From positions 2,108,001 through 2,172,000 of the forward strand of contig CDRNST010000090.1 in assembly GCA_977016875.1 (NCBI GenBank): DNA of 64,000 nt. The letters are read 5' to 3'. Positions 16,090 through 49,100 of the stretch are shown here, piece after piece; position 1 is the first letter of the stretch, and each line of letters starts with the position of its first letter. This stretch comes from Pavona decussata (taxonomy: Eukaryota). The notes under the pieces were generated by a model. That model had not been told where the DNA came from and searched no databases. It worked only from the letters and a program-made list of their open reading frames with translations. The translations under genes and the position numbers were made by a program.

Positions 16090-18330
16090 CTATTCAAATA
16101 TCTGAATACGGTCATTGCAGCCGCCACACACAACTATCCTACCATCAGTGAGTACTGCAGTAGAGAATGGTCCAGTAAACTCACCAATCTCACTGCCGGG
16201 TCCTCCAAATTTTGTTATAAAATTTCCGCTCAGATCGAACACCTGAATTCTGTCATTACCAAAATCAGAAACAATCAGTTGTCCTGCCTTGTCAACTGAC
16301 AAGCAATGCGGTAAATTGAATTCCCCGTCTCCCTTCCCCCTCTTTCCAAATGTATATAAAAAGTCACCCTCACCAGTGAAAACTTTAATACTATGATCAG
16401 CGTGGTCTGATACTATTAGATTGTTGCCCTTCTGTATACAGTGACACGGAATTACTAAAGAGTGCTCTCCACCAAATTTACGTAACAGCTGGCCATTAGG
16501 AGAGAAAATCTTAATTAGCCTGTGATTTGAATCAGTAACAATAATGTTACCATCACTGTCTACAGACAAACCCACGGGAAAATCAAGTTGGTGATCAAGA
16601 TTTCCCTCACCACCAAACTGACTGAGGTATTCCCCCTGCCCATTGAACATTTGCACTCGGTTGTTAAACTGGTCAGCCACAACAATGTTTCCATTATTAA
16701 GAAAAGCTATCCCAGTTGGACAGTCAAATTCCCCGTCTTGATCACCCTCCCCACCAAAAGACCTCAAGTAAGTTCCATCAATACTAAATACCTGGAGCCT
16801 ATTGTTACTTTTATCAGTCACAGCAATTTCGTTACGTTCATTCACTGTCACTCCCCAAGGTGTATTAAACATTCCAACAGATGAACCTTTTCGTCCAAAA
16901 GATAACACAGGCCTGTATTGTCTGGTTTTGATTTGAACAGTGAAAGGACTGTCACGAACATGTTCTCCATTTACCATCACTGATGCTTGGCATGTTCCAG
17001 TTTCTTTGGCAAAATAGCTGATATTGTAGGTGCCATCTTTGTTATCCTGTATATTCACTTCTGTCGTACAGTCATGGCCCTGATCATTTCTTATTTCCAT
17101 TGTTACGCAGTCAAACTCTTCGTAACATTGTTTCTCCTCAGCGTTTCGTGTTGTTAAAACGAGCTGTGCTTCAAGACCAACAGTTGCTTCGCTGATTCCT
17201 TTTCCTTCGGCACTTGATTGGTGCGCCTTAGTTTTGCTGATAAATGTTTTGACAGATCCGATCCGTTCATAGCTTGCTTTCTCCATTAGGTCAATGTTTC
17301 CCACGAAAAAAAGACAACCCGGATCTTCAAAATCACATTCAACTGGTTCTCCAGCATTACTGATGCTTTCCAGGGAACTTTCGTCCAACTGTACAAGTTC
17401 AGCGCTTGTGCTTCGGTTAGCAAGCGTTTCAATGTTTTCGATTGCTGTCTCTATCCTCTGTAATTCATTTTCCACCACGCACTGTTCCATATCCAGACGC
17501 TTCACTGATTCTTTCCCTTTGTTTTCAACTTCTCTAAAAAACTCCTGTTTCTTCGCTTCGATGACTTTCATCATGTTGTCAGCAAATATCTGCGCGTTTT
17601 GCTTGACGCTAGCGACCTGTCTTTGAATTTTAGTTCGCTCATCTTGTAGTTTGGAGAGTTTACTTTTCTTCCGAATCGCTTTTTGTTTGTGAGATTCAAT
17701 CACGCATTTTACGCGTAGCTTTCGTTCATTAGCAGCTTCTGCCAGTGGTGCCTTAGCATGACCGTCGTGAAGTGTTACAACACAAGTGTTGCAAATAGGA
17801 ACTTTGCAATCCTTACAAAAGAACTTCAGCTCTTCGTTTTCGTGATGTTCCTTCTGGCAAAATGCTGGTCGCTTTATCACATCTTCAATGTCTTGATGTT
17901 GAAAGTCTTTAAGAGCGAGCACGCGATGTTCTTTGTTCGCTCGGATTATGTTGTGCCCCAAAATGCAGTCCTCGCACCAAAACACTGAACACTGAAAACA
18001 GTAAAAACACTGCGCGCTTCTTTTCTCGCAGTTTCCACATTTTACGCCGGTAGAGTTACATTCTTGAATGGCCAACACATCCAATAAGCTGTTCAATCGA
18101 AAGTTGGTGGGCAACTGGTCAGGAGTTCCGCTCCCAGCGATTCTGAATTCCCCACGACATTCAGGGCAGCTGATCTGTCCAACTCTGCCGCTTGTTCGTT
18201 GAAGCTTGTTCAAACAATGAAGGCAATAGCTGTGTAAGCACGGCAGAACTTTTGGATCAGTGAACGTGTCTCCACACACAGAACAAGATACCTCTTTGTG
18301 AAGATTATGAAGTAAGGTTTTGAGATCCAT
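16090..18330 (-). CDS. TRIM-NHL E3 ubiquitin ligase copy 2 (RING, B-box1, B-box2, coiled coil, filamin-Ig, six NHL repeats); intronless; TRIM2/3/71-like
   Basis: 746-aa ORF with C3HC4 RING (CSVC...CLHSYCLHC...CPEC), B-boxes, filamin motif DNKDGTYNISY, and six F-x-x-P-x-G ... D-x-x-N-x-R-IQVF repeats. Confidence 0.95.
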   Translation of the reverse strand: MDLKTLLHNLHKEVSCSVCGDTFTDPKVLPCLHSYCLHCLNKLQRTSGRVGQISCPECRGEFRIAGSGTPDQLPTNFRLNSLLDVLAIQECNSTGVKCGNCEKRSAQCFYCFQCSVFWCEDCILGHNIIRANKEHRVLALKDFQHQDIEDVIKRPAFCQKEHHENEELKFFCKDCKVPICNTCVVTLHDGHAKAPLAEAANERKLRVKCVIESHKQKAIRKKSKLSKLQDERTKIQRQVASVKQNAQIFADNMMKVIEAKKQEFFREVENKGKESVKRLDMEQCVVENELQRIETAIENIETLANRSTSAELVQLDESSLESISNAGEPVECDFEDPGCLFFVGNIDLMEKASYERIGSVKTFISKTKAHQSSAEGKGISEATVGLEAQLVLTTRNAEEKQCYEEFDCVTMEIRNDQGHDCTTEVNIQDNKDGTYNISYFAKETGTCQASVMVNGEHVRDSPFTVQIKTRQYRPVLSFGRKGSSVGMFNTPWGVTVNERNEIAVTDKSNNRLQVFSIDGTYLRSFGGEGDQDGEFDCPTGIAFLNNGNIVVADQFNNRVQMFNGQGEYLSQFGGEGNLDHQLDFPVGLSVDSDGNIIVTDSNHRLIKIFSPNGQLLRKFGGEHSLVIPCHCIQKGNNLIVSDHADHSIKVFTGEGDFLYTFGKRGKGDGEFNLPHCLSVDKAGQLIVSDFGNDRIQVFDLSGNFITKFGGPGSEIGEFTGPFSTAVLTDGRIVVCGGCNDRIQIFE

Positions 18331-18405
18331 GACTAGCGTCGCAAAACGGTGAAGATTTAGTTGAATACAATATGCATTGTGGTCTTGTGATCATATGACA
18401 AAACC

Positions 18406-18427
18406 GACCAATCACGGAGTGTAGTTT
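18406..18427 (-). promoter_or_regulatory. Candidate proximal promoter motif (CCAAT box plus adjacent conserved block) of the TRIM-NHL genes
   Basis: gaccaatcac-N3-gtgtagttt lies ~75-100 bp upstream of the ATG in copies 1-3 (~451, ~18406, ~28931). Copy 4 has gaccaaccac (~49176). The conservation could simply reflect recent duplication. Confidence 0.35.
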
Positions 18428-19900
18428 TGGTTTACCTTAAAATTTGGAATCCGGAATCCGGAATCCGGAATAGTTAAAAAAAAATGAAAATTCGTCGACA
18501 TGAAAATTTCAACGAAGGTTAAAGCCACTTGGCAAACAGTTTTTATGGCTCTTGAAAAATTATAATATCAGTCAGGATCCCAGTGAAATTTTCAAAAGTT
18601 TGCCTAAGATTTCTATTGCTGCAGTTACAGTGTAAGCCTATGGCGTTAGTATTCTAAGGCAGTCCCTTTTAAAGCGTAAAACTTTAAAACACACTAGAAT
18701 GACACCTATCTATGTATTTTAAAATCAAATACACGGAATTCGTAAATCAGAAAAGACTTTCTTTTCTTTCTTTTTTCTTTTTCTGTGTAACTTGCCGTAT
18801 GCTGATTGGCTAATGAGTAGGGGATTTTCGTTCTTTCGGAAGAGCTAGGGGCGAGAGATGTGTACGATTGGTGGTATTTTGACAGGTACAGAAGGCAGCA
18901 AATTAACGCATTCACGATGGTGACGATGGAAAGATATCTTTTCATGTGTCATAACATTGTGACTAACGTATATTACGGCTCAACGATTTTTTTGGGCATT
19001 AGGGTGGAAATGGGGCTTAAAATATTCAGACTTATTACCTCTAAATCAAAACCAATAGATCTACGGCTTCCAAGGTACCTGGAATTAGAGGATATAAAAA
19101 AATTTGTTATCTACATCCTGCTATTGTGATCACTAAATTATGGGAAATCGTTCACGGGCTCCTGAAATTATTACTGTATTTCAAAAAAGGCCATCGACAC
19201 AAAACGTTTCCTTTGTACCGGCAGCTCGACAATCTTTTGTAAAAAGGTGGATAAATGAATACATGCATACATGACTGAACGTAGGAGTGTATGCCGGCAG
19301 GCATGACAGAACCACGAGCGAGTGAGTGAGTGAGCGAAGGAACGAATGAATGAATGAATGAATGAATGAACGAACGAACGGACGGACGGACGGATGAGTT
19401 AATAAATGAATAAATAATTTTGCCCGCTGCCTATCCAGCGTCGGTGCCAATTCCAAGCTGTTTTTTTTATTAGATGAAATCGAAGTCACCCCCCATACCG
19501 AGTTGTTTCAATACTTTTAATATTATTATGCAAAGACAGTGATCAGTCTTGCGAAGAGTTGATGAGTGATAAACTCAACACTGACTCTTTTCTCTAGTTA
19601 CCTTTCAGTGTCTCTCTTCGTTCTATGGGGAGGAGGAATCGTTAACGAGTAGGAAGAGGTGTGGGGGTATTTAAGAGTAGGTTTGAAGATTGGGGACCTT
19701 TATTCCAAATGAGTGGCTCAACTGCCTCAGCAATTGAAATCTAAGGCAAACTTTTGAAATCCTGCCTGATATTACAATTTTTCAAGAGCTATAAAAACTG
19801 TTTCCCAAGTGACTTTAACCTTCGTTGAAATTTTCATGTCGACGAATTTTCATTTTTTTATTTTATTCTGGATTCTGGATTCCTGGTTTTATGTAAACCA
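18428..19900. mobile_element. Non-autonomous DNA transposon with ~190-bp imperfect TIRs
   Basis: Termini tggtttac / gtaaacca. Arms 18428-~18625 and ~19720-19900 are reverse complements. Target tagttt is duplicated (6-8 bp depending on the terminus call). Empty site gtgtagttttgaca at ~464-477. Confidence 0.85.
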
Positions 19901-20213
19901 TAGTTTTGAGATGTTTTGGCTAAATCTGAGTTCTGAGAATGATTCCAAAAATATTCAAGATTTCCAAGAATTGAGTGTTGGAAACGAGTAGGGACTGGAA
20001 CTAGTCAAATTCGCACGTGATCATTTGTAATCAGATTTCTCGGAAAGATTCTTGTTTTGAGTGTGACTCTCGAAGGAACTCTGGAACTATTACTTCTAAA
20101 TGTAGCGGGATTTATCTTGTACGTCGGGAATAGCGGAATTCTCTCTCAAGGAATGTTATCATGTAATCTTCGAGTTTATCAAGTATTAAAGAGTTTGGTC
20201 AAGTACAACATTT

Positions 20214-20231
20214 TGGTGCCGAGACCCGGGA
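20214..20231 (+). promoter_or_regulatory. Primer binding site of BEL element 2 (tRNA-Phe-like)
   Basis: tggtgccgagacccggga just after the 5' LTR, one mismatch to the usual tRNA-Phe PBS TGGTGCCGAAACCCGGGA. Confidence 0.7.
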
Positions 20232-20274
20232 GTGAAAGCAAGGAGAACAGAGCACGTGTTTTGTGATCTTCGCC

Positions 20275-22068
20275 ATGTCGGATGTCAAAAAGAAAATTCT
20301 GGAGCGCTCAGGGTTCAGAGTTCACGTTCGTAAAGTTATGAACGAAGTCAAGGAGTTACTCAACAAAGGTGATGTGGAAAGCGTCCAACTGAAGCTGAAA
20401 TCGCAAAAGATTAACCTGGAAAAATATCAGAAGGAAATTGCATCGCTTGACCAAGAAATCGCAGAATTATTGCAAGCCGACGCAATCGAAAACGAAATCC
20501 TGGAGCGCTGCGAGTTCAACGCGTCGTTACAAGAAACGATCTTACTGATAACCTCATGTTTGTCGTCTCCTAAGCAGGAAGCGAATGATGTCGAAGAAAC
20601 GGTGACATTGCCATCGACGAGTCCGCAAGGATCTTTCCCTGCTCAAAATGGCGCGAAGGGCACAAACAAGGCAAAGCTACCGAAGCTCACGTTACCTAAG
20701 TCTACAGGGGATACCACAAAATGGACAACATATTGGGACAGCTTCTCATCCGCAATTCACACGAGTGAGGAGCTGAATGAAGTCGACAAATTTCAGTATT
20801 TGAAATCATTATTGGAGGGCGCTGCAGCCGAAACCATTTCTGGTTTACCTCTCACAAGCTCAAATTACAACCATGCGGTCGATCTCCTAAACAAGCGGTT
20901 CGGAAGCAAACAAGTTATCATCTCTAAGCACATCGAGATGTTAATGCAGCTACCAAACGTGAGTGATACTGGTGAGCTTAAACAATTGCGGCAATTGTTG
21001 GACAAAACAGAGTCGGCTGTTCGAAGTTTGCAAGGAATTGGAATTTCCATTGACACGTATGGAACATTCCTAACCTCCGTGATCATGGCGAAAATTCCCC
21101 AAGAGTTCCGTTTAATTTTGAGTCGTGGTATGAGCGACGAGTGGGACCTCGACACATTAATAAAGTCGTTTGCAGAGGAGTTACAGATACGAGAAAGGTG
21201 TGCTCTGGGTCCAGTGACAGATCAGTCGAAAATGAGAGAAAAACGAGAGTTTGGATATGGATTACGGTTCGGTCAAAACAAGAGACCCCCCACATCGTCG
21301 ACACTTGTTTCATACAACGACAGGCCTCAACAACATAAGGAAATGTGGTGTACTTTTTGCAGTGGACCGCACCCTTCGGCGAGATGCGCTGTTGTTACGG
21401 AGCCAGAAGCGAAGAAAAGAATTCTCCGCCAAAAGGGGCGATGTTTTGGTTGTTTGAGGAGTGGTCATGTGAGCCGAGATTGCCAAGCGAGATGTCATCG
21501 TTGTGGCGGGAAACATCATGTATCGCTATGCGGCGTGCAAAGCTTTTCACCACAGTTCACGCAAGCAAGAAGAACCAATCAGGAACAAAGTGTGAGTACA
21601 AATTTGTATTTCACTCAAGTTGTTAAGAGTAATTCTGTTTTGCTGCAAACTGCCAGAGCGAGGGTCGGAAATCCTAATGGAGAAAATTCTTGCCATGTGA
21701 GGGTTTTATTTGATTCATGTTCTCATAGGTCTTACATAAGTACACGGTTGAGGAGCAAGTTAGGCCTGCCCTCATTTGGAAATGAAACTGTTCTGATTAA
21801 AACGTTTGGAAACAATGAAGCCTCGTTGGAGAAATGTGACATTGTTCAGTTTGCACTGGAATGCCAAGATCAGCTGAAAGTGTTTGTCAATGCTTATGAA
21901 GTTGAACTGATTTGTGGACCCATAGCCAACCAGACCATTGACATTGCACAGCAAAATTACCCTCATCTACAAGGCTTACCCCTTGCTGACTATTCCCGTG
22001 GGGATTTAGATCTTGAAGTAGATATTATGATTGGCGCTGATTATTACTGGTCCATTGTCCAGCCTTAA
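20275..22068 (+). CDS. BEL/Pao gag with three Cys/His knuckles and aspartic protease (truncated by deletion)
   Basis: KLPKLTLP...DKFQYLKSLLEG; CTFC..H....C, CFGC...GH....C, CHRC..KHHVSLC; VLFDSCS; DIMIGADYYW. Confidence 0.85.
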   Translation: MSDVKKKILERSGFRVHVRKVMNEVKELLNKGDVESVQLKLKSQKINLEKYQKEIASLDQEIAELLQADAIENEILERCEFNASLQETILLITSCLSSPKQEANDVEETVTLPSTSPQGSFPAQNGAKGTNKAKLPKLTLPKSTGDTTKWTTYWDSFSSAIHTSEELNEVDKFQYLKSLLEGAAAETISGLPLTSSNYNHAVDLLNKRFGSKQVIISKHIEMLMQLPNVSDTGELKQLRQLLDKTESAVRSLQGIGISIDTYGTFLTSVIMAKIPQEFRLILSRGMSDEWDLDTLIKSFAEELQIRERCALGPVTDQSKMREKREFGYGLRFGQNKRPPTSSTLVSYNDRPQQHKEMWCTFCSGPHPSARCAVVTEPEAKKRILRQKGRCFGCLRSGHVSRDCQARCHRCGGKHHVSLCGVQSFSPQFTQARRTNQEQSVSTNLYFTQVVKSNSVLLQTARARVGNPNGENSCHVRVLFDSCSHRSYISTRLRSKLGLPSFGNETVLIKTFGNNEASLEKCDIVQFALECQDQLKVFVNAYEVELICGPIANQTIDIAQQNYPHLQGLPLADYSRGDLDLEVDIMIGADYYWSIVQP

Positions 22069-22073
22069 CACCA

Positions 22074-25061
22074 TTGATCTTTGACATTCTCCTACGATTT
22101 CGTCTCCACAGAGTTGCATTGATTGGTGACTTGGAGAAAGCATTTTTAAATGTTGAAGTGGATCCTGAACAGAGGAATTTGTTAAGGTTCTTGAGCATAA
22201 ATGACATCAGTTCCTCGAATCCGGAAGTCATTATCCTTAGATTCACACGGCTTGTGTTTGGCCTTGTCTGTTCACCGTTCATTTTGAATGTAACCCTGAG
22301 AAATCACTTAAGCAAGTATGAGAACATTGATCAAGACTTTGTGAACACTGTTGTCAAAGCTTTGATGTGGATGACTTTGCATCCGGAAAGGATTCGGTAA
22401 AGAACTGCTTCGAACTTTACGGAAAATTGAAGTTGCCATTCAGGGAAGGAGGTTTCAACATGCGAAAATGGGCATCGAACAGTGAAGAACTAAACCAGTT
22501 GATTGAGAAGGAGGAAGCTAACCTGTCATCATCAACTCAGACAATTTCAGAAACCAGTCCTTCTAGTTCTTTGACAAAGTCTGGTGTTCTTGAAGAAGAC
22601 CTCATCAAAGTGATGGGAGTTCCATGGGATAGGAAAGAAGATAGTTTCAAGTTTGATCTTGCAACCTTTGCTACTCAAGCACTGGATGGAACACTGGCAA
22701 AGCGGAAACTGTTGAGCATCACTGCTCGATTTTATGATCCATTAGGCTTGTCACCAGTTATGTTGCCATTGAAGTGTATGTTTCAAGAGATATGTCAGCT
22801 CAAGATTGGCTGGGATGAGGCCCTACCAGAAGAACTCTGTTTAAAGTGGAAAGAAGTCGCAGAAGACATGTTGAGAGTTTCAGTGATAAGTGTCCCTCGC
22901 TGTGTCCTAGCTGGGATAGAAGCAGAAGATGTCAAGTCTATTCAACTACACGGTTTTGCAGACGCGAGTAAGATTGCTTATGGTGCAAACATCTCAATCG
23001 GGTGACAACCTCTAATGTCAGCTATTCGCAGTTGTTAGCCTCTAAAACTAGGGTGGCACCCTTGAAGGGAGAGACAATTCCTAGATTGGAATTGATGGCA
23101 GCATTGACTCTAGCAAACCTGATGACAGCTGTGCACAAGGCATTGGCTTGTACCATCAAGATTGATGCTGTGTTCAATTGGATTGATTCTCAGATTGTAT
23201 GGTGGTGGATTAATGGAGAGTCAAAACAATTCAAGCAGTTTGTGCAGAATCGAGTAACAAAGATTCGAAGTCTCTGGAGTAAAGAACATTGGGGATATTG
23301 CCCTTCTGAACTTAACCCAAGTGACATTGCCTCGCGAGGAGCCAAGAGCTCCGATCTCGTTTCCAATGATCTATGGTGGGAAGAAGCACCATTTCTAGAG
23401 AAGGAGAAGAATCAATGGCCAAGCCCACCTAATTGTCCTGTTGGTGAAGGCACCCTCTCAGAAGAAACTTCAAAGAAAGTGAAGAAAGAACATGCAGATG
23501 GAATCTCACAAGTAATGAACGTATTGGTCCAAGCCCCTGCAAATATCTCTGAAGTCGTCCAACCAGAGAGATTTAGCAGTCTCAGCAAGCTTATCAGAGT
23601 AACTGCCCTTGTATTGAAGTTCATCAGACGGCTTAAAAGAGTTCCAGAAATGCATTCAAATGTTAGTTCACAGGAAATTAATGCCGCAAAAATTCTCTGG
23701 TACAAAGACGTTCAAGGGAAACTTGATGAAAGGGAGAGATCAAGTTCAACTTGGGAACAGTTAGGAGTCTTTAAAGATGAAGATGGAGTATTGCGATGCA
23801 AGGGAAGGATTCAGAATTCCTCTCTTCCATACTCAGCAAGTTTCCAATCCTGTTACCGAGAAAGCAGCACTTCACAAGATTAGTAATTGCACAAAGTCAT
23901 GAAAACGTGAAACACAATGGGGTTAGAGAAACTCTCACTGAAACTCGGTCACAGTTTTGGATAATCAAAGGACGACAAGCTGTCAAGGATGTACTCTGTA
24001 AGTGCATTACATGTAAGAAGATAGCTTTCAGTGGCCCACCTCCTCCACCATTACCCTCATTTCGAGTCTCAGATGATGTGGCCTTCTCCAAAGTTGGTGT
24101 AGATTTTGCTGGCCCCCTTTATGTTAAGAATATCTACCAGTCCAAGGGAAACATGTTCAAGTGTTACATTGCTCTATTTACATGTCCAAGTACCAGAGCT
24201 GTGCACCTTGAACTCACACCGGATTTGACCGCCAAGTCATTTCTAAGAGTGCTCAAACGTTTCTTTGGAAGACGAGGGATACCCAGCCTGTTTATCTCAG
24301 ATAACGGAAAAACTTTCAAAGATTCAGAAGTTCAGAAGTTCGTTCTTAACAAGAACATTGACTGGCATTTCAACGTGCCCACTGCGAGCTGGTGGGGCGG
24401 GTTTTTCGAAATCTGCGTCAAACTTGTGAAAAGGTATCTGAAGAAAGTACTGGGAAATGCAAAGCTTAGTTATGAAGAACTGGAATCAGCCCTGATTGAA
24501 ACTGAAGGAGTGTTAAATTCCAGGTCGTTAACCTATGTTTACAATGAGTTGTCAGAAGCTCCACTAACACCTTCTCATCTCGTAATTGGTCGACGTCTCT
24601 TGGAGCAACCTTCTGCTACCAGTGTACCTCTGAGCGCTCTAGCCCAACGGGAACGATATTTGGAGAGTCTCCTCACCCACTTCAGAAATTGATGGAGGAA
24701 AGAATACCTGACTGGCATCAGAGAGTATCAGAAACTTAAGGGAGAACCGAGGAGAACTATTCAAATTGGTGACCTTGTGCACATATATGCAGACAAAACA
24801 CCTAGACAGCAGTGGAGAATGGGGAAAGTAGAGAAGCTGTTGCGAGGAAGAGACAACGTTGTTCGCTCCGCCGAAGTGGCTACGGTAGACAAATCTCTGC
24901 GCAGGATTCGCATCAAGCGTCCAATTCAGAAGCTCTATCCTCTTGAAGTTAATGTGTTTGATGAAGGAGCAGCTGATACGGGAGCTGTCCAGTGTCACAG
25001 AGCAAGGAATATTTGTGTAGTCAGAGATGAAGATATTCCAATTGTGGTTACTGCATCTTAA
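22074..25061 (+). pseudogene. BEL/Pao pol (RT-RNaseH-integrase) broken into several frames
   Basis: DLEKAFL, VDD region, HGFADAS, IPRLELMAA, GVDFAGP, SDNGKTF, WWGGFFE, RPIQKLYPLE spread over consecutive ORF pieces. Confidence 0.9.
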
Positions 25062-26601
25062 CTTTCAGATCTAAAACTTTGAACATTGGGCTGAATTTAA
25101 AGAGTTATGTTTACAGGTTCGCCTTATGATTGACTCCGTCAATCAGGGGGAGTGTGTTGGAAACGAGTAGGGACTGGAACTAGTCAAATTCGCACGTGAT
25201 CATTTGTAATCAGATTTCTCGGAAAGATTCAGTCTTGTTTTGAGTGTGACTCTCGAAGGAACTCTGGAACTATTACTTCTAAATGTAGCGGAATTTATCT
25301 TGCACGTCGGGAATAGCGGAATTCTCTCTCAAGGAATGTTATCATGTAATCTTCGAGTTTATCAAGTATTAAAGAGTTTGGTCAAATACAACATTGAGAT
25401 CACAAAAGCTTGACCCACAACTGATAAGAAGCCGATGACAGGATCCTTCGGGATACTCTTACGACTAAAAAACTGACCTTTAAAGGTTTAACTAAAAAGG
25501 AAAACAATTCACATCGCTTTAATGTTACGACTTGTTGTATTCATATCATTATAAATCCCTATATAGCACACCCAACTACTTTAACATATGCGATTTTATT
25601 AGTGTTTCAGTGCACTGAAAGTGGTCAAAAGTGTGAAGGTTGTAGTTGAGGTGCTGACATGTAAAAATGACAAAATAAGATCTATCGTGATTTTTCATGT
25701 TCTTGCATCACTGGGCACGTATGCAAATAATCGATAAAACACTTCCAAGGAACTCGGCCGAGTGCACTGTGGAAAAGAGAGTTTATAATAGATGAAGGAA
25801 ATTTTACTTTTTGTAAATAAATAGTTGATTGTAAAACCGAAAACTGGAGCTCAAATAAATACGTGCGTATTTTTTTTTGAGGGGGGTCTTTGTTTACAAA
25901 GTAATCAATCGTCCAAATCGGTGACAATGAAACAACTGAATTATGACGCACGGTTTTCTGACAACAAAGATTCAAAGATCATGAATTGTGGATAAAATAT
26001 AATTTATTCGTAGTTTCATTCCTTTATGCTTTACAAACTGGTAATTGAGTGCAAACATAATATACTTGAGTCCAGGATGTAAACCCATGTTTAGTTATAC
26101 AACGAAAAACAAGATGCTACAAATTTTACAATGCAGAAAGAAAATAAAATCATTTAGGTAAAAAGGTATTTGTTATCATTCGTTATATGTTTGTTATTGT
26201 TAAGCTACCTCTGAAACAACTTAACCGCTCTAATGTAAGTTTCTTATTCAGTGTTATTTGGGTTCTGCTTTGGTAACTCCTCTCTAAGTACGAAAGCAAC
26301 TGAATCGCAGGAAATACAATCTTCACTCGTAAGAAGGTTTTCTTGTTTTAATGTGGTCACGCTTTAGTTTACAAAGTAAAACATCATCCAAATGGGCATT
26401 GAAATCAATTAACTCCTGCCATCCGAGGTTTTGTAACAACAAAGATTGTGGAAACATACACTCTAACGTGATGTTGATTAAAAAAGTTTACCTCAGGGAG
26501 CATCTATCTGCCGATGTGTATCGGGATCTGAATATATGAAACTGCATTATTAATCGATAACTAACCAGACGATATATAGTACAAAATGTAATATCTGATC
26601 T

Positions 26602-28845
26602 CTATTCAAATATCTGAATGCGGTGGTTTAAGTTATCACAAACAACAATCCTACCATCAGTGAGGACTGCAGTAGAATTTGGCCCATTAAACTTTCCAAT
26701 CTCTCTTCCGTTTTCTCCAAATTTTGTTACAAACTTTCCACTCAGATCAAAGACCTGAATTCTGCTGTTATAATAATCACAGATTATCAGATTTCCTGCC
26801 TTGTCAACTGACAAGCAGCCCGGACTATTAAATTCCCCGTCTCCCGTTCCCCTGTTTCCAAATTTATATAAAATGTCGCCCTTGTCATTAAACACTTTAA
26901 TACAATCATCACCCTCGTCTGATACTATCAGATATTTGTCCTTCCGTATACAGTGAAAGGGGTTGATTAACGAGCCCTCTCCACCAAATTTACGTAACAA
27001 CTGACCGCTGGGAGAAAAGATCTTAATTAGCGTGTGATTTGAATCAGCAACAATAATGTTACCATCATTATCGACAGATAAACCGCAGGGATATTCAAGG
27101 TGGTGATCAAGATTTCCCTCGCCACCAAACTGACTGAGGTATTCCCCCTGTCCATTGAACATTTGCACTCGACAGTTTAAGAAATCAGTGACTGCAATAT
27201 TTTCATTTGTGCAAAAATCTATTCCACAAGGACCATAAAGTTCCCCATCTACATCACCCTTCCTACCAAAAGATCCTAGGTAAGTTCCATCAATACTAAA
27301 TACCTGAACCCTATTGTTTTCTTTATCAGTCACAGCAATTTCGTTACGTTCATTCACTGTCACTCCCCAAGGTTCATTAAACATTCCAACAGACGAACCT
27401 TCTCGCCCAAAAGATAACACAGGTCTGTATTGTCTGGTTTTGATTTGAACAGTGAAAGGACTGTCACGAACATGTTTTCCATTTACCATCACTGATGCTT
27501 GGCATGTTCCAGTTTCTTTGGCAAAATAGCTGATATTGTAGGTGCCATCTTTGTTATCCTGTACATTCACTTCTGTGGTACAGTCATGGCCCTTATCATT
27601 TCTTATTTCCATTGTTACGCTGTCAAATTCTTCGTAACATTGTTCCTCCTCAGTGTTTCGTGTTGTTAAAACAAGCTGTGCTTCAAGACCAACAGTTGCT
27701 TCGCTGATTCCTTTTCCTTCGGCACTTGACTGATGCGCCTCAGTTGTGCTAGTGAATGTTCTAAGTGACCCGATCCCTTCTAAGTTTGTTTTGTCCATTC
27801 CTTCTTTGTTTCCCACGAAAATAAGGCGATCCAGATGTTCAAAATCCCACTCAACATCTTCTCGAGCATTACTTAGGTTGCTTTTCAGAGAGACAGCGTC
27901 TAATTGTACAATTTCAGCGTTGGGGCTGCAATGAAGAACCCTTTCAGTTTTTTCGATCGCTGTCTCAATCCGCTGTAATTCATGTTCTATCTCGCTTTGT
28001 TTTATCTTCAGACGCTCAAGTGATTCGTTCGCATTGTCATCCATTTCTCGAAAGATGTCTTCTTTCTTTGCTTCGATGACTTCCATCATGTTGTCAGCAA
28101 AACTCTGTACGTTTCTCTTGACCCTAGCGACATGTGCATGAATTTTAGTTCGTTCATTTTGAAGTTTAATGATTATATTTCTTTTCTGAAGCGCTTCTTG
28201 TTTCTGAGATTCAATCACAGATTTCACGTATAATTTTCGTTCATTGGCAGCTTCGTCAAGAAGAACCTTCGCGTGGCCTTCGTGCAATGTCACAACACAA
28301 GTGTTGCAAATAGGAACTTTACAATCCTTGCAAAAAAATTTCAGTTCTTCTTTCTCATGAAGTTTCTTCTGGCAAAATGCTGGTCGCTTTATCACATCTT
28401 CAATGTCTTCAGCTTGAAAGTCTTTAAGAGCCAGCACGCGGTGACCTTTGTTTGCTCGGATTATGTTGTGCCCCAAAATGCAGTCCTCGCACCAAAACAC
28501 AGAACACTGAAAACAGTAAAAACACTGCGCGCTTCTTTTGTCGCAGTTTCCACATTTTACGCCGGTAGAGTTACATTCTTGAATGGCCAACACATCCAAT
28601 AAGCTGTTCAATCGAAAGTTGGTGGGCAACTGGTCAGGAGTTCCCCTCCCAGCGATTCTGAATTGCCCACGACATTCAGGGCAGATAATCTGTCCAACTC
28701 TGCCGCTTGTTCGTTGAAGCTCGTTCAAACAATGAAGGCAAAAGCTGTGTAAACAAGGCAGACTTTTTGGATCAGTGATCGTGCTCATACACACAGAACA
28801 AGATACCTCTTCGTGAAGATTGCGAAATAAGGTTTTCAGATCCAT
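26602..28845 (-). CDS. TRIM-NHL E3 ubiquitin ligase copy 3 (most divergent paralogue); intronless
   Basis: Same architecture as copy 2. Start placed at the ATG of MDLKTLF (28845) by homology, giving 747 aa. Confidence 0.95.
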   Translation of the reverse strand: MDLKTLFRNLHEEVSCSVCMSTITDPKSLPCLHSFCLHCLNELQRTSGRVGQIICPECRGQFRIAGRGTPDQLPTNFRLNSLLDVLAIQECNSTGVKCGNCDKRSAQCFYCFQCSVFWCEDCILGHNIIRANKGHRVLALKDFQAEDIEDVIKRPAFCQKKLHEKEELKFFCKDCKVPICNTCVVTLHEGHAKVLLDEAANERKLYVKSVIESQKQEALQKRNIIIKLQNERTKIHAHVARVKRNVQSFADNMMEVIEAKKEDIFREMDDNANESLERLKIKQSEIEHELQRIETAIEKTERVLHCSPNAEIVQLDAVSLKSNLSNAREDVEWDFEHLDRLIFVGNKEGMDKTNLEGIGSLRTFTSTTEAHQSSAEGKGISEATVGLEAQLVLTTRNTEEEQCYEEFDSVTMEIRNDKGHDCTTEVNVQDNKDGTYNISYFAKETGTCQASVMVNGKHVRDSPFTVQIKTRQYRPVLSFGREGSSVGMFNEPWGVTVNERNEIAVTDKENNRVQVFSIDGTYLGSFGRKGDVDGELYGPCGIDFCTNENIAVTDFLNCRVQMFNGQGEYLSQFGGEGNLDHHLEYPCGLSVDNDGNIIVADSNHTLIKIFSPSGQLLRKFGGEGSLINPFHCIRKDKYLIVSDEGDDCIKVFNDKGDILYKFGNRGTGDGEFNSPGCLSVDKAGNLIICDYYNSRIQVFDLSGKFVTKFGENGREIGKFNGPNSTAVLTDGRIVVCDNLNHRIQIFE

Positions 28846-29357
28846 GGCTGGAAGCGTCGCAAGACAACGAAGGTTCAATTGGATATAAAACCCATTCAGC
28901 CATGGAACCTTGTGACATTTCTAAAATACTGACCAATCACGAAGTGTAGTTTTGACTTATTTTGACAAGTCTGGATTCTACGAATGATTCCAAAAATATT
29001 CAAGATTTCTAAGAATTGAGATCACAAAAGCCCACAACTGATAAGAAGCCGGCAGGATCCTTCTGGATAATCTTACGACTAAATAACTGACCTTTAAAGA
29101 TTTGATTAAAAAGGAAAATAGTACATACCGCTTTTTGAAGCGATATATAAACATCACGGTCCTGTTGTGTTCATATTATTATAAATCCCTACATAGAAGA
29201 CCATAGAACACCCAACTAATTTTACATACGCGATTTATTAGTGTTTCAGTGCACTGAAAGTGTTCAAAAGTGTGAAGGTTGCAGTGGAAGTGATTTAAAA
29301 TGATAAAACATAATCCATCGTAATGTTTTATGTTCTTGGATCACTGCATAGGTAGGC

Positions 29358-29552
29358 TTTACAGTGCGACTACTGTTACCGGGGTCACTTAAACAAAACT
29401 GGCCAATCAGATTGCAGGACAAGAACAATAAATTTCAACCAAAGCCGATTGAACCAATCACAAGTAGAATTTGAATTATTCACCGTTTGTATCATAATGT
29501 GATCTGATTGGCCAATTTTAAGTGACCCCGGTAATAGTAGTCGCACTGTAAA
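29358..29552. mobile_element. MITE with long TIRs
   Basis: tttacagtgcgactactgttaccggggtcacttaaa ... tttaagtgaccccggtaatagtagtcgcactgtaaa. Confidence 0.75.
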
Positions 29553-31079: not shown

Positions 31080-31943
31080 ATGGGCAGAAAGCGTCCGAAG
31101 CAAGGATCGAGTTCATCCGTAGATGAAGATGACATGGCCGCCTCGAAGTTTAAATCGCTACAGAACTCTATAGATGGTTTAAACAAAGTGGTGACGGACG
31201 GCTTTGCGAACATCCATACTGATATAGACAACCTCCGCTTCGAATTCAAGACTGAAATTGAGGGAATTAAATCTACTATTAAAGATATCGAAAGAGGTTT
31301 GGAGACCACGCAAGAAGATGTCGAAAGCGTAAAGGAGGACGTGAAGAAGGTTGCTGAGGATTTTTTGGAGAGTACTAACACCTTGAGCGGAAAAATTGTC
31401 AAACTCGAGCAGCTCTCAAAGAGCCCTGAAGTCACTGAAGCCTTGAACGCAAAAATTGTGAAACTTGAAACCCAGCTCAAGCAGCAGGAAGAGGAAAATA
31501 TCAGACTCGAACAGTACACGAGAAGAGAAAATCTTCGCTTCAACAACATATCGGAAATAGAGGATGAGGACTGTAAATCAGTTATTCAAGATATAATTCA
31601 GCAAATGGGGATTGACTCATCTACAATTCGATACCATGCTGTGCATAGAGTTGGAAGAAGATTGGAAGGAAGACACAGACCTATTATAGTACGTTTTGTA
31701 AGTCGTGAAGACAGAGAGCTTGTATGGTCCAAACGAGGTAAGATTAAACAATTACATCAGTTCAAAGATGCCTACATAACGGAGGATTACGCCCGGGCGA
31801 TCCAAAAAGAGAGACAAATCTTAATTAAAGCTATGATGAAGGCCCGAAATGATGGAATGGATAACGTAAAGGTAGTAGGCAGATTTCTGGCGGTGAACGG
31901 AGAGAGATTTGATTGCAAATCGATCCCGGACAATTTAATGTGA
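31080..31943 (+). CDS. LINE ORF1 protein (coiled coil + RRM-like + CTD)
   Basis: 287 aa; long heptad region, then RRENLRF, HRVG, RPIIVRF, ITEDY, typical of L1/Tx1 ORF1. Confidence 0.85.
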   Translation: MGRKRPKQGSSSSVDEDDMAASKFKSLQNSIDGLNKVVTDGFANIHTDIDNLRFEFKTEIEGIKSTIKDIERGLETTQEDVESVKEDVKKVAEDFLESTNTLSGKIVKLEQLSKSPEVTEALNAKIVKLETQLKQQEEENIRLEQYTRRENLRFNNISEIEDEDCKSVIQDIIQQMGIDSSTIRYHAVHRVGRRLEGRHRPIIVRFVSREDRELVWSKRGKIKQLHQFKDAYITEDYARAIQKERQILIKAMMKARNDGMDNVKVVGRFLAVNGERFDCKSIPDNLM

Positions 31944-32376
31944 CTTTAGCTTTAGTTTTAGTAAAAATGTCTTGAAGGTTTTCAGTCTTCAAACATATTT
32001 GATGAGTACGGTAACACAAATGCTGCTCAGGAGGTTTTATCTGAATATTTATCCTTTAGACTGCCTCCGAAGTCTCAAATTTAGTTCCATATTATGTCGT
32101 ACAAAACTCTACACATTTACTTGTGTAATTAAAATTTCCCAGTTGTATGAGAAAAAATCCCTTTGTGGATGTTTTGAACACCTACAAAACCTCAGGGGAA
32201 AACGGCCCACTAATTGAACATTTTAATTGTAATGTTAGTATGTTGTGCTGGGGTTCTTCTGCGTATATATTTAAATCTTTGTTTGTTTCATGTGTATTAA
32301 TTCCAACCTTCCCTAGCTACCTTTTTCCGCTCCGTGGCTGCGCGATTTGCAATGGGCAATATCAACTCAATTATAA

Positions 32377-35300
32377 ATGAGTCTCAGTATCTGTTGTCTT
32401 AATGTGAGACGACTAGGTGACAATTTGAAAAGAAGAGAGCTCTTCAACTGGCTTAGAATGCAAAAACACTCAATCTACATGCTGCAAGAAGTTCATTGCT
32501 CTGAAGGCACAAATTCCATGTGGACCGCAGAATGGGGATATAGGACAATTTTTAGTGGGCAAGATAGCAGTAAGTGTGGGGTTGCCATTTTGTTTAACAA
32601 CACCTTTAGCTTTGAAATCCGAAAATTTTTCTCTGACCCAAATGGTAGATTTATTATTTGCGACATTGAAACAGAACAGAAATGTGTTACTTTGGCCACA
32701 TTGTACGCGCCTAATGTTGATGACCCAAGTTTTTTTGAGCTTTTCTTTGATCATTTACACGACTTTGGGTGTGACGAAATCATTATAGGTGGAGATTTTA
32801 ATCTTGTTTTGAACATAGAAATGGACAAGAAAGGCGGACTTGCTAGGACACACCTTAAGTCCCAAGTGACTGTTAAAGACCGCGCTGCCCAATTTGACTT
32901 AGTAGACGCGTGGAGAACAATAAACCCGGATAGCCGCAAATACACTTGGCGTCGAAGAAAGCCTGAAACCTTATGCCGCCTAGATTTTTTCCTCGTAAGC
33001 CAGTGTCTTATGTGTAGTGTTACGAGCGCAAATATCTCAGCTGGTTATAAAACAGATCACTCTCTTATTGACATTAAAATAGCCCTTCACTCGAACCTTA
33101 GAGGTCCAGGTTACTGGAAGCTTAACACCTCTTTTTTAACTGACATCGATTATATTACTCAGATCAGAAGTGTTATTAAGAAAACCCATGAAGAATATCA
33201 AGATGATGATACCGTAAGCAAAGGCTTGCTATGGGAGATGATGAAACTTAAGATAAGAGAGCAGTCAATAAAGTACGCGACGGCTAAAAAAGTAAAAATG
33301 TCTAAACGTGAAGGAGAACTTGAGAAAGAAATTAATTTTTTGCAAAATTTTATAGAATCTAATGAAATAAACCCAAACGAAAAAACAAAGATCTCTGGCA
33401 CTCTCGAGGCCAAGAAACGGGAACTGGAAAAGATTATTGAGTATCGCACCAAAGGGTCAATTTTAAGAGCTAGATGCAGATGGTATAACGAGGGGGAAAA
33501 AATACGAAGTATTTCCTAAACTTGGAAAAACGACATTTTAAGCAAAGCGCCATCACCCAGCTAAAAGTAGACGATCAGAACTTCGTTATAACTGATAAAG
33601 AAATTTTAAATCAATGTGAAGCCTTTTACAGAAACCTTTATAGTTCAAAGATTGACTCCCCTAATGAAAAGTATGATCATATTTTCTTTGAGGCATCTAC
33701 AAAGAAGCTAAATCAACTAGAACAGGACAGCTGTGAGGGTCTTTTGACGAAAACGGAATGCCTAAAGGCATTAAAAGAAATGGATTCCAATAAAACACCG
33801 GGCTCAGACGGGTTACCTGCTGAATTTTATAAAATGTTTTGGAATGATGTTGCCGACTTTCTTCTTGGCTCAATCAATTATGCTTATCAAACAGGGCAGT
33901 TATCCGTATCCCAGAAGCGTGGGATCATTAAACTTATTCCGAAAAAAGATACGGAGCCGTACCTCGTTAAAAACTGGCGTCCAGTATCTCTGCTAAATTG
34001 TGACTACAAAATAGCCACTAAAGCTGTCGCTAATCGCCTCAAACTAGTTCTTTCTAAACTCATTGATAACGATCAGACCGGCTTCCTAAAAGGTAGATTT
34101 ATCGGAGAGAACATTAGACTTATTGATAGTGTCATCAACTTTACAGCTGCTAAAAACATTCCCGGGCTTCTAGTTTTCCTTGATTTTGAGAAAGCCTTTG
34201 ATACAATTGAGTGGCCTTTTATACATAAGACCTTTGACCACTTTAATTTTGGCTCATCCACTCTAAGATGGATTAAGCTCTTTTACCATGACATAGAAAG
34301 CTGTATCTTGAACAATGGCTCGTCTAGTAATCTTTTCAAGCTAGAAAGAGGGGTTCGGCAAGGCTGCCCGCTGTCACCTTACTTGTTCATTCTAGGCGCA
34401 GAAGTTCTTGCTGACGCAATAAGGAAACACAATAATATTAAAGGCATATTAGTTGATGGACAGGAAATAAAAATCAGTCTATATGCAGACGATACAACTC
34501 TTATTTTAGATGGATCTAGGGCATCCTTCCAAAATTCACTGCAGATTTTAGAGTTTTTTTAGAGCGATATCCGGCCTCCAACTAAATTATAAAAAGACAG
34601 AAGTGCTGTGGATTGGCGCCAATGCAGGAAGCGAAGAAAAAACTGTGCCCCGAGCACGATTTAAGGTGGATGAGAGATAAGGTAAAAACTCTAGGGGTAT
34701 GGCTCTCAACAGACCCAGGAATAATGTTGAAAGTTAACTACGAGGAAAAAATAACAAAACTTAAGGCAAGCTTGGGCTGCTGGGAATTGCGTAGATTAAG
34801 TCTGCTGGGAAAAATTTCTGTATTAAAAAGCTTAATTGTCTCTCAACTCACGTATAATTTGTCACCTTTGCCAACAAGCCAGTGTGCTATTGGTGAAGTC
34901 AACACCCTATTCTTTAAGTTTTTGTGGGATGGCAAAGGCGACAAGATTAAGCGTGATATAATGATAAGTGATTATGAAGATGGAGGTTTAAAGATGATTG
35001 ATATAAGGCTCTTTACTCAAGCTTTGAAACTTAGTTGGGTGAAAAAATACCTTGACAAAGGAAATGAGGCAAAATGGAAGCTTTTCTTCAATGTACAATT
35101 AACAGACTTAGGCGGAGACATTATTTCAAAGGTAATCTCCACTAGAAGGATATATTAACTTACTTTAAGGTATCGGATGTTTTCTTGGAAGAAATTTTGC
35201 AAATTTGGTCAAATGTTATCTACGAAGATAACATTTGCTCAAAGAAACAGTTACTGTCACAGAGTCTCTGGCTAAATTCTCTTATTCGTGTTAATAATAA

Positions 35301-36084
35301 ACCAATACACTATTTATTATGGTCTTCTCAAGGAATACAGAATATCGGTCATTTGATGGAAAATGAGACCAGATTTTTATCTTTCTCTGAATTCAAAGAA
35401 CGTTTTCACATCAAGATAAATTTTCTGACTTTCTATGGAGTGATATCAGCTGTAAAACATCTGGTTATAACCTTTAAAAATAACGCCTCTCAGGAAAGCA
35501 TCAACTACGAAAGTTTTCTTGATAAGTTTCTAAAGGCCAAAAATACAAATAAGATAGTACACAGAAAACTTATAGAAAAGAAACGAAAGCAGCCCGTGAA
35601 TAGGCAAACGAAATGGTCGGGAGACTGCATGATAGAAAAAAATGAACCTATTGACTGGAAGACTGCTTATGGGCTGCCCTTTGAATGTACCAAAATCTCA
35701 AAACTTCGCGTTTTCTAATTTAAACTGCTACACAGGAGATTCGCCACTAATGATTTCTTAAAAAAAATAAAGCTAAGGGATAACGATCTTTGCAATTTCT
35801 GCCAAATTGAAGAGGAAACTCTCATCCATCTTTTCTGGAACTGTACGGTAACGTCCGGTTTCTGGCATAATTTTAGGCATTGGCTGCTCAGAAACGAATC
35901 TTCTGTGCGTTCTCTTGAGCTAACCCCTTCCTTGGTCATAGGCTTAAAGACCCACCCACTATTTTGCAAAAATTTTTACTTTTTATTCTTAGTCGCAAGA
36001 CTCTATATCTGGACTTGTAGAATACAAATGACTCATCCTACAATTGACACGTTCCCCCTTTTCCTCTCACATTACAATCTTTAA
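32377..36084 (+). pseudogene. LINE ORF2 (APE endonuclease, RT, C-terminal CCHC) with three frameshifts and one stop
   Basis: LQEVH, GGDFN, RLDFF, TDH; PGSDG, WRPVSLLN, LDFEKAFD, GVRQGCPLSP, YADD; CNFCQIEEETLIHLFWNC. Frameshifts at ~33500, ~34560, ~35125; TAA at 35716-35718. Confidence 0.9.
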
Positions 36085-46856: not shown

Positions 46857-49100
46857 CTATTCAAATATCTGAATACGGTGATTACCCCAGTCACACACAA
46901 CTATCCTACCATCACTAAGTACTGCAGTAGAGGTTGGTCCTTTAAACTCACCAATCTCACTGCCGGGTCCTCCAAATTTTGCTATAAACTTTCCACTCAG
47001 ATCGAACACCTGAATTCTGTCATTACCAAAATCAGGAACAATCAGTTGTCCTGCCTTGTCAAATGACAAGAAACGCGGTCGATAGAAATCCCCGTCTCCC
47101 TTCCCCTTCTTTCCAAATTTATATAAGAAGTCACCCTCACCAGTGAAAACTTTAATACAATGATCAGCCGCGTCTGATACTATTAGATTGTTGTCCTTCT
47201 GTATGCAGTGACAGGGATCTATTAAAGAGCGCTTTCCGCCAAATTTACGTAACAACCGGCCATTAGGAGTGAAGATCTTAATTAGCTTGTGATTTGAATC
47301 AGCAACAATGATGTTACTATCACTGTCTACAGACAAGCCCCAGGGATAATCAAGCTGGTGATCAAGATTTCCCTTACCACCAAACTGACTGAGGTATTCC
47401 CCCTGCCCATTGAACATTTGCACTCGGTTGTTAAAGGTGTCAACCACGATAATGTTTCCATTATTAAGGAAAGCTATCCCACGAGGACAGTCAAACTCCC
47501 CGTCTTTATCACCCTCACGACCAAAAGACCTCAAGAAAGTTCCATCGATACTAAATACCTGAACCCTAACGTTATTTCTATCAGTCACAGCAATTTCGTT
47601 ACGTTCATTCACTGTCACTCCCCAAGGTTCATCAAACATTCCAACAGACGAACCTTGTCGTCCAAACGATAACACAGGTCTGTATTGTCTGGTTTTGATT
47701 TGAACAGTGAAAGGACTGTCACGAACATGTTTTCCATTTACCATCACTGATGCTTGGCATGTTCCAGTTTCTTTGGCAAAGTAGCTGATATTGTAGGTGC
47801 CATCTTTGTTATCCTGTACATTCACTTCTGTGGTGCAGTCATGGCCCTGATCATTTCTTATTTCCATTGTTACGCTGTCAAATTCTTCGCCGTAACACTG
47901 TTCGTTCTCAGCGTTTCGTGTTGTTAAAACAAGCTGTGCTTCAAGACCAACAGTTGCTTCGCTGATTCCTTTTCCTTCGGCACTTGATTGAGGCGCCTTA
48001 GTTTTGCTGATAAATGTTTTGATACATCCAATCCCTTCAGAGCTTGCTTTCTCCATTAGGTCAATGTTTTCCACGAAAAAAAGGCAACCCGGATCTTCAA
48101 AATCACATTCAACTTGTTCGCCAGCATTACTGATGCTTTCCAGGGAACTTTCGTCCAACTGTACAATTTCAGCGCTTGTGCTTCGGTTAACAAGCGTTTC
48201 AGTTTTCTCGATTGCTGTCTCTATCTGCTGTAATTCATTTTCCACCACGCACTGTTCCATATCAAGACGCTTAACTGATTCTTTTCCTTTGTTTTCAACT
48301 TCTCTAAAACATTCTTGTTTCTTCGCTTCAATCACTTTCATCATGTTGTCAGCAAATATTTGTGCGTTTCGCTTGACGCTAGCGACCTGTGTTTGAATTT
48401 TAGTTCGCTCATCTTGAAGTTTAGAGATTTTACTTCTCTTCTGAAGCGCTTCTTGTTTGTGAGATTCAATCACAGATTTTACGCGTAGCTTTCGTTCATT
48501 GGCAGCTTCTGCCAGGGGCGCCTTAGCGTGACCTTCATGAAGTGTTACAACGCAAGTGTTGCAAATAGGAACTTTACAATCCTTACAAAAGAACTTCAGC
48601 TCTTCGTTTTCGTGATGTTCCTTCTGGCAAAATGCTGGTCGCTTTATCACATCTTCAATGTCTTGATCTTTAAAGTCTTTAAGAGCGAGCACGCGATGTC
48701 CTTTGTTCGCTCGGAATATGTTGTGTGCCGTAATGCAGTCCTCACACCAGAACACAGAACACTGAAAACAGTAAAAACACTGCGCGCTTTTTTTCTCGCA
48801 GTTTCCACATTTTACGCCGGTAGAGTTACATTCTTGAATGGCCAACACATCCAATAAGCTGTTCAATCGAAAGTTGGTGGGCAACTGGTCAGGAGTTCCG
48901 CTCCCAGCGATTCTGAATTCCCCACGGCATTCAGGGCAGGTGATCTGTCCAACTCTCCCGCTTGTTCGTTGAAGCCCGTTCAAACAATGAAGGCAATAGC
49001 TGTGTAAGCAGGGAAGAACTTTTGGATCAGTGAACGTGTCTCCACACACAGAACAAGAGACTTCTTTGTGAAGATTATGAAGTAAGGTTTTGAGATCCAT
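46857..49100 (-). CDS. TRIM-NHL E3 ubiquitin ligase copy 4; intronless; closest to copy 2
   Basis: 747-aa ORF with the same architecture. ATG is ~1.65 kb downstream of the SFI1 stop. Confidence 0.95.
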   Translation of the reverse strand: MDLKTLLHNLHKEVSCSVCGDTFTDPKVLPCLHSYCLHCLNGLQRTSGRVGQITCPECRGEFRIAGSGTPDQLPTNFRLNSLLDVLAIQECNSTGVKCGNCEKKSAQCFYCFQCSVFWCEDCITAHNIFRANKGHRVLALKDFKDQDIEDVIKRPAFCQKEHHENEELKFFCKDCKVPICNTCVVTLHEGHAKAPLAEAANERKLRVKSVIESHKQEALQKRSKISKLQDERTKIQTQVASVKRNAQIFADNMMKVIEAKKQECFREVENKGKESVKRLDMEQCVVENELQQIETAIEKTETLVNRSTSAEIVQLDESSLESISNAGEQVECDFEDPGCLFFVENIDLMEKASSEGIGCIKTFISKTKAPQSSAEGKGISEATVGLEAQLVLTTRNAENEQCYGEEFDSVTMEIRNDQGHDCTTEVNVQDNKDGTYNISYFAKETGTCQASVMVNGKHVRDSPFTVQIKTRQYRPVLSFGRQGSSVGMFDEPWGVTVNERNEIAVTDRNNVRVQVFSIDGTFLRSFGREGDKDGEFDCPRGIAFLNNGNIIVVDTFNNRVQMFNGQGEYLSQFGGKGNLDHQLDYPWGLSVDSDSNIIVADSNHKLIKIFTPNGRLLRKFGGKRSLIDPCHCIQKDNNLIVSDAADHCIKVFTGEGDFLYKFGKKGKGDGDFYRPRFLSFDKAGQLIVPDFGNDRIQVFDLSGKFIAKFGGPGSEIGEFKGPTSTAVLSDGRIVVCDWGNHRIQIFE

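Follow-up and report, generated by a model that had tools for sequence, protein, structure and literature searches.

Within the TRIM family, rapid adaptive evolution is associated with the vertebrate SPRY branch. In TRIM5alpha and TRIM22 of primates, as in the finTRIM and bloodthirsty genes of fish, positive selection is concentrated in loops at the surface of the C-terminal recognition domain. The genes for TRIM71/LIN-41, TRIM2, TRIM3 and TRIM32 have introns, occur as one or a few copies and change slowly, and Brat, which is without a RING, is a single conserved gene. The TRIM-NHL proteins are commonly regarded as the developmental branch of the family, one that evolves slowly (PMC2533329). 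We have analyzed a stretch of 64,000 nucleotides from the coral Pavona decussata (assembly GCA_977016875.1, contig CDRNST010000090.1, positions 2,108,001 to 2,172,000), hereafter the window, which carries three intact TRIM-NHL genes. Here, the NHL branch is the expanded, diversifying one, and its selected residues match the RNA contacts of LIN41.

By domain order, the coral genes are identical to the class VII TRIMs (subfamily C of Marin 2012, PMC3503706), namely TRIM71/LIN-41, TRIM2, TRIM3 and Thin/TRIM32. They are unlike the TRIM71/LIN-41 group in forming a family of more than 100 intronless tandem copies and in showing ratios of nonsynonymous to synonymous rates (omega) of 2.4-4.5 at the positions equivalent to LIN41 contacts. 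With TRIM5alpha/TRIM22 and finTRIM they have in common a constant E3 module made of RING, B-boxes and coiled coil (RBCC), lineage-specific tandem expansion, and selection on loops of the recognition domain. However, TRIM5 and finTRIM use a B30.2/SPRY domain, whereas the coral family uses an NHL β-propeller in a cnidarian host, where an antiviral role would be putative.

The closest geometric parallel is found in fungi. In HET-E and HET-D, which are NLRs of the NWD/HNWD group, diversifying selection acts on pairs of residues flanking a conserved residue, and each WD40 blade carries these pairs in its d-to-a loop and its b-c turn, on the top interaction platform (PMC1805685). These are the same two loops per blade that vary in the coral NHL domain. 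The fungal proteins join a WD40 propeller to a HET/NACHT effector, while the coral proteins join an NHL propeller to a RING. Moreover, the repeats of HET-E and HET-D are near-identical and are shuffled within and between genes, whereas the coral blades are distinct and the diversity lies between whole-gene paralogues.

An earlier note on this DNA had described three TRIM-NHL open reading frames (ORFs), which were borne out by the ORFs themselves and by Pfam matches in all three copies. The genes and the domain on which the analysis centers are as follows.

16090-18330, minus strand: copy A (copy 2 of the earlier note), an intact single-exon TRIM-NHL ORF of 746 amino acids, with Pfam matches.
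16093-16932, minus strand: NHL propeller of copy A, residues 467-746, six four-stranded blades, from an AlphaFold2 (AF2) model, Foldseek and site models.
26602-28845, minus strand: copy B (copy 3 of the earlier note), an intact TRIM-NHL ORF of 747 amino acids from an MDL start; NHL domain at 26605-27444.
46857-49100, minus strand: copy C (copy 4 of the earlier note), an intact TRIM-NHL ORF of 747 amino acids; NHL domain at 46860-47699.

Copies A and C are 89% identical at the amino acid level, and copy B is 77% identical to both. In all three, Pfam detects a RING, two B-boxes, a Filamin domain and four to five NHL repeats. The RING is of the C3HC4 type (matches to zf-RING_UBOX and zf-C3HC4), and its eight zinc ligands (C16, C19, C31, H33, C36, C39, C55 and C58) are all invariant among 29 paralogues, in which nearly all B-box zinc ligands are invariant as well. 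As for the region that follows, the AF2 model of residues 1-470 of copy A, with an overall predicted local distance difference test (pLDDT) score of only 61, contains a single helix of ~110 residues (196-306, pLDDT 70-90), then shorter helices, and a β-sandwich at 373-468 for the Filamin domain (Pfam E 1e-19). The modeled helix and sandwich fit the coiled coil and the filamin domain of a typical TRIM. The NHL domain, residues 467-746, was modeled with a pLDDT of 96.5 as 24 strands arranged in six four-stranded blades. Its top Foldseek matches are all TRIM NHL domains, with TM scores of 0.93-0.94 and 36-38% identity for Thin and TRIM71/LIN41, and it superposes on the NHL domains of Thin, TRIM71/LIN41, TRIM2, TRIM3 and Brat with TM scores of 0.85-0.94. 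The last of these, the six-bladed NHL domain of Drosophila Brat (4zlr, TM 0.85, 28% identity), binds RNA on its top face. No SPRY or PRY domain was matched by Pfam in the copies, and the same scan found no signal peptide or membrane domain, so that the proteins are presumably cytosolic. This predicted architecture, i.e., RING, B-boxes, coiled coil, filamin and six NHL repeats, places the genes in class VII of the TRIM-NHL proteins.

The variable residues are arranged regularly on the blades. With the invariant Pro at the start of strand A (P) and the Asp at the end of strand B (D) as anchors, we defined 36 positions a priori over the six blades, following the variable motifs of the earlier note, namely P-2, P-1 and P+1 of the motif F-x-x-P-x and D+1, D+2 and D+4 of the motif D-x-x-N-x. 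Every motif string quoted in the earlier note is present in copies A, C and B, and its statement that radical changes recur at two spots per blade agrees with the counts, since A and C differ in amino acid at 21 of the 36 positions vs 26 of the other 244 in the NHL domain. Multiple base changes within loop codons, which the note had also pointed out, are found between these two copies in 12 of the 36 codons (two or three bases each) vs 3 of 244 elsewhere in the domain. The positions that are hypervariable in each blade are P-2, P-1, P+1, D+1 and D+2. Parts of the face are constant: the B-C loop of blade 3, DSNH[KR], is conserved, Trp is kept at P+1 of blade 1 in most copies, and blade 4 retains P-x-H-C. 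Trp (55-fold), His (7-fold) and Tyr (3.8-fold) are over-represented at the 36 positions, as are Arg and Asn, a composition typical of binding interfaces or hot spots.

Selection was measured with codon site models in five clades taken separately: C90 (copies A, B and C, a fifth intact copy, D, located 2.4 kb to the right of the window edge, and four relatives from other assemblies), C56 (12 paralogues), C519 (9), C129 (9) and C91 (10). Lists of five values below follow this order. We used our own GY94/F3x4 pruning-likelihood script, which gives an M0 likelihood of -4841.75 vs -4841.73 from IQ-TREE. Site likelihoods were tabulated over a grid of omega on IQ-TREE codon trees built per partition, and M1a, M2a, M7, M8 and M8a were fitted as mixtures, with branch lengths kept at the values estimated under M0. 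For the NHL domain, twice the difference in log-likelihood (2dlnL) between M1a and M2a is 106, 60, 154, 137 and 120. In C90, C56 and C519, it is 118, 87 and 156 for M7 vs M8, and 102, 56 and 153 when M8 is compared with M8a, in which omega is fixed at 1. The selected class comprises 4-11% of the sites, with omega 3-6. For the N-terminal RBCC-filamin part, the M1a vs M2a comparison gives 2dlnL of 9, 0, 1.6, 12 and 6.5, with an overall omega of ~0.4; sites flagged by M8 in this part of C56 were discarded, the class having omega = 1. As a null control, we simulated ten data sets under M1a along the C519 tree; in the identical pipeline, their highest 2dlnL was 6.2.

Purifying selection preserves the scaffold of RING, B-boxes, coiled coil and filamin, which has become partly homogenized between neighbors. 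In contrast, some 15-20 residues on the "upper" face of the NHL domain have been under recurrent diversifying selection after each duplication. In each blade, the diversifying residues flank the invariant Pro opening strand A and directly follow the Asp ending strand B. Sites with a posterior >0.9 concentrate in the D-to-A and B-to-C loops. Those falling within the 36 positions are 11/15, 10/12, 15/17, 16/17 and 13/16, compared with a chance expectation of about two (hypergeometric P 3e-8 to 3e-15), and the remaining ones are mostly at P-10, which is the loop residue directly following strand D. Only 2 of 44 selected sites in C90, C56 and C519 lie in bottom loops (A-B or C-D). The D-to-A and B-to-C loops share one face of the propeller, a placement that comes from propeller topology and LIN41 contact mapping rather than from measured distances.

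A relative provides an external reference. In zebrafish LIN41, RNA is contacted by 14 residues of the "upper" surface, which faces away from the filamin domain (Kumari et al., PMC5908797), a set that is defined independently of the coral data. When copy A is aligned to 6fpt_A by phmmer, with the invariant P and D anchors used for blades 4-5, all 14 contacts map onto P-2, P-1, P+1, D+1 or D+2 of blades 1-5. LIN41 and the coral family thus have the same ligand face, with every LIN41 RNA contact aligned to a position that is variable in the coral. Omega was estimated for each class of residues.

Equivalents of the 14 LIN41 contacts, five clades: omega 3.0, 2.4, 3.25, 4.5 and 3.75, each with P<1e-12 vs omega = 1.
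All 36 positions, five clades: fixed-partition omega 2.4, 1.5, 2.8, 3.5 and 2.8.
Other top-loop residues, C90, C56 and C519: omega 0.43-0.65.
Bottom loops, C90, C56 and C519: omega 0.23-0.40.
Strands, C90, C56 and C519: omega 0.20.

The earlier note had proposed a constant effector joined to a diversifying top face of the NHL domain, and had set omega above 1 at the loop codons as a check. The latter was found in five independent clades, at sites that co-locate on the ligand face, in the D-A and B-C loops, one-to-one with contact residues on the "upper" surface of LIN41. The invariant RING ligands, together with nearly all B-box ligands, an N-terminal omega of ~0.4 and the lack of a strong positive-selection class in that part, support the constant RBCC effector and hence the note's core inference.

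These genes contain conversion-like tracts, recombination is able to raise the test statistics of site models, and branch lengths were fixed in our tests. It might therefore be argued that omega above 1 is an artefact of gene conversion, alignment error or an approximate method, or that the loops are simply unconstrained and evolve neutrally. However, M8 is better than M8a by a 2dlnL of 56-153 while null simulations do not exceed 6.2, and the fixed-partition estimates of omega exceed 1 significantly in each of the five clades. For the remaining top-loop residues, omega is only 0.4-0.65, a sign of constraint on the loops themselves. Gaps are nearly absent from the NHL alignment, and third codon positions diverge evenly throughout the domain. 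A tree-free Nei-Gojobori comparison, pooled over nine independent sister pairs, yields a dN/dS of 3.1 at the 14 LIN41-equivalent sites (116 nonsynonymous to 11 synonymous changes, P=1e-3). For the 36 sites, the value is 1.5 (P=0.04), and outside them it is 0.36. Neutrality or artefact is thus largely refuted here, and we regard it as very improbable.

Hypermutation of the loop codons was ruled out as well. On a FUBAR-like two-rate grid with an expectation-maximization prior, the class means of the nonsynonymous rate are 1.6-3.2 at candidate sites vs 0.33-0.41 elsewhere, and those of the synonymous rate are 0.97-1.74 vs 1.05-1.14; we used class means alone, per-site lists being noisy and inconsistent at 8-12 taxa. 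Since synonymous divergence at the selected codons is similar to that in the rest of the NHL domain, selection acts on replacements and there is no local hypermutation.

The conversion-like tracts lie outside the NHL domain. Among copies A, B, C and D, synonymous divergence is almost nil in codons 51-100 and 401-500 (about 18031-18180 and 16831-17130 in copy A), whereas dS between them is 0.3-0.8 elsewhere. Copy B is a mosaic in this respect, with an A-B dS of 0.05 in filamin vs 0.5 in the coiled coil. Homogenization of the filamin tract is seen within C56 as well, where two genes (L006 and L015) differ at 2 of 47 same-residue codons, but not between clades. These low-dS tracts look like gene conversion homogenizing the constant modules, although selection on synonymous sites might produce the same pattern.

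The genes in the window belong to a large family. With the NHL domain alone as query against the 602-Mb assembly and a cut-off of E<=1e-30, we found at least 133 related NHL domains, a figure that comes from scoring 138 of 408 first-look candidates, and about 95 of the 133 sit in open frames of 600 amino acids or more. Tandem arrays occur on contigs C56, C129, C183, C91, C519 and C49. Genes on C129 and C183 (about 680 amino acids) have a RING, B-box, coiled coil and NHL domain without filamin, a TRIM32-like layout, and those on C91 (about 793 amino acids) carry an insert of ~40 residues between filamin and NHL. The pattern of selection on the top face is present also in the filamin-less C129 clade and in the insert-bearing C91 clade. 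Among named proteins, the best relatives are "TRIM71" predictions from Porites and Stylophora, and there are many unnamed relatives in coral genome assemblies and Tara coral metagenomes.

The family is lineage-expanded and turns over rapidly, with copies being born in tandem and lost. In another assembly (ERZ25073751), the counterpart of copy D, X35, is separated from it by a dS of 0.009 and has an identical NHL domain. On the same contig as X35, there is an intact gene, X31, whose nearest relative in our assembly is the copy-1 pseudogene described below (94.9% nucleotide identity). Since X31 is without a close counterpart here while D and X35 are near-identical, copy content differs between very close genomes. 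The identity of the D and X35 NHL domains also means that diversity is shown between paralogues, not as allelic polymorphism.

These properties bear on what the diversified face might bind. The selected sites coincide with the RNA contacts of LIN41, and the closest solved relatives of the NHL domain are RNA-binding developmental regulators. The RNA specificity of NHL domains has been argued to be evolutionarily plastic (PMC5908797), and a TRIM71-like gene is developmentally regulated in Acropora (PMC12924552). The coral proteins could then be endogenous post-transcriptional regulators, like LIN-41, Brat and Mei-P26, which acquired new mRNA or protein targets after duplication, with no recognition of non-self. 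Such a role is difficult to reconcile with more than 100 copies, pseudogenes and copy turnover. Nor does it sit well with the finding that the same positions have changed again between very recent duplicates (dS 0.05-0.2), which fits continuing rather than episodic selection. In addition, the basic pocket of LIN41 is not conserved: residues R564, R581, R611, K628, R676, R707, R752 and R770 of DrLIN41 correspond to T, K, C, Q, N, C, L and G in copy A. Because this pocket is not kept and the genes are not single-copy, the coral genes are not LIN-41 orthologues. Overall, we consider the endogenous-regulator explanation unlikely.

A variable face might alternatively read determinants of conspecifics or of algal symbionts, as part of an allorecognition or symbiont-specificity system, in place of an antiviral or anti-transposon one. 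There are precedents, since in the allorecognition NLRs of fungi it is the same two loops, on WD40 blades, that are diversified (PMC1805685), and a scleractinian-restricted NHL-domain gene with Ka/Ks>1 in Acropora, which would bear on the matter more directly if homologous to the present family, is induced by native symbionts (PMC7783167). The presumably cytosolic location of the proteins argues against this, and so does the identity of the D and X35 NHL domains, whereas allorecognition loci are expected to be highly polymorphic. We judge this possibility even less probable than that of endogenous regulators.

The explanation that we favor, with a probability of roughly 0.7, is that the genes form an intronless TRIM family of class VII type in which a constrained scaffold carries a diversifying NHL ligand face, providing paralogue-specific intracellular recognition coupled to ubiquitination. 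Each paralogue would present a different binding surface, directed at a fast-changing class of intracellular ligands, candidates for which are viral or transposon RNA or protein and symbiont or pathogen factors, and binding would be coupled to RING-dependent ubiquitination. The logic would be that of TRIM5 and finTRIM, with an NHL β-propeller as the recognition domain in place of B30.2/SPRY.

Several points weigh against this explanation. The basic RNA pocket of LIN41 is not conserved, the net charge of the 36 positions ranging from -4 to +5 across paralogues. The site models were run with our own code, under constant M0 branch lengths and without a formal screen for recombination, and the tree-free test over all 36 sites is only marginal (P=0.04). 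The near-allelic pair D/X35 has identical NHL domains. Only 15-21% of the k-mers of copy A are present in RNA or probable-RNA runs, and these could stem from relatives. Finally, transposon insertions of ~7 kb begin roughly 100 bp upstream of the ATG of copy A.

NHL-repeat and B-box orthogroups are known to be expanded in merulinid corals (PMC11639872), and a TRIM71-like group with a Ka/Ks of 1.14 has been reported (PMC9145168). A full-text literature search found no description of site-specific selection on the NHL face. The present family is the NHL counterpart, in a cnidarian, of the known diversifying TRIM families, with a recognition function that we infer. It is a candidate germline-diversified repertoire of intracellular sensors in corals, whose immune and symbiont-recognition receptors are poorly known, and it offers, for use in binding experiments, about 15-20 candidate positions per propeller that would determine specificity. 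Its convergence with the fungal WD40 NLRs is clear as well. A broader proposal, which we put forward tentatively and think more doubtful than not, is that the NHL propeller of stony corals is a general hypervariable module for intracellular recognition, a counterpart of the SPRY domain of vertebrate TRIMs or of the leucine-rich repeats of NLRs, with hundreds of germline specificities against foreign RNA or protein. If true, this would be a previously unrecognized arm of cnidarian innate immunity or symbiont control.

The remainder of the locus consists of a fourth, decayed copy and of mobile elements.

1-332 (tblastn match 3-332), minus strand: copy 1, an N-terminal stub (residues about 14-123) of a TRIM-NHL pseudogene, which runs on to the left of the window.
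6707-12075, minus strand: Pao/BEL-type long terminal repeat (LTR) retrotransposon between copy 1 and copy A, with 348-bp LTRs that are 99.4% identical.
18430-25392, strand not assigned: nested insertions that cut copy A off from its ancestral upstream region, from self-comparison with 18743-18778 masked.
18453-19883: element bounded by 169-bp inverted repeats, part of the nested insertions.
19975-25395: degenerate Pao-like LTR element, with LTRs 97.1% identical and Pfam matches to DUF1759 gag, Integrase_H2C2 and rve.
31080-35718, plus strand: degenerate long interspersed nuclear element (LINE) between copies B and C, with ORF1-like, endonuclease and reverse transcriptase parts.

In full, the copy-1 pseudogene extends over C90:2106131-2108338, in the genome sequence beyond the window, and contains nine stops plus indels. 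Its mutation spectrum shows no excess of C>T/G>A or CpG changes and is that of an ordinary decayed copy. Self-comparison aligns 45992-49199 with 15210-18429 at 88.9% nucleotide identity. The duplicated unit defined by such alignments was originally compact, of ~4 kb, comprising 3' flank, coding sequence and ~0.5 kb upstream, and was spread apart later by the young Pao-type LTR element, the degenerate LTR element, the inverted-repeat element and the LINE. Copy A retains only ~100 bp of upstream homology to the other copies, the ancestral upstream sequence resuming at 25393-25713; its promoter may have been displaced, its ORF being nonetheless intact. The Pao/BEL element at 6707-12075 has an intact pol ORF (7183-10881, 1232 amino acids, with Pfam matches to Peptidase_A17, rve and DUF5641). 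It looks like a recent insertion and may still be active.

A short contig in the ENA, checked as a possible transcript, was a Tara metagenome DNA scaffold and is uninformative on expression. Outside the window, small ORFs with Pfam MIEAP matches adjoin TRIM-NHL homologues in three other assemblies or metagenome scaffolds, at the following loci.

L031, 16416-18500: MIEAP-adjoining homologue locus.
L033, 15847-18510: MIEAP-adjoining homologue locus.
L036, 507-785: MIEAP-adjoining homologue locus.

The MIEAP ORF may be a conserved neighbor of TRIM-NHL genes.

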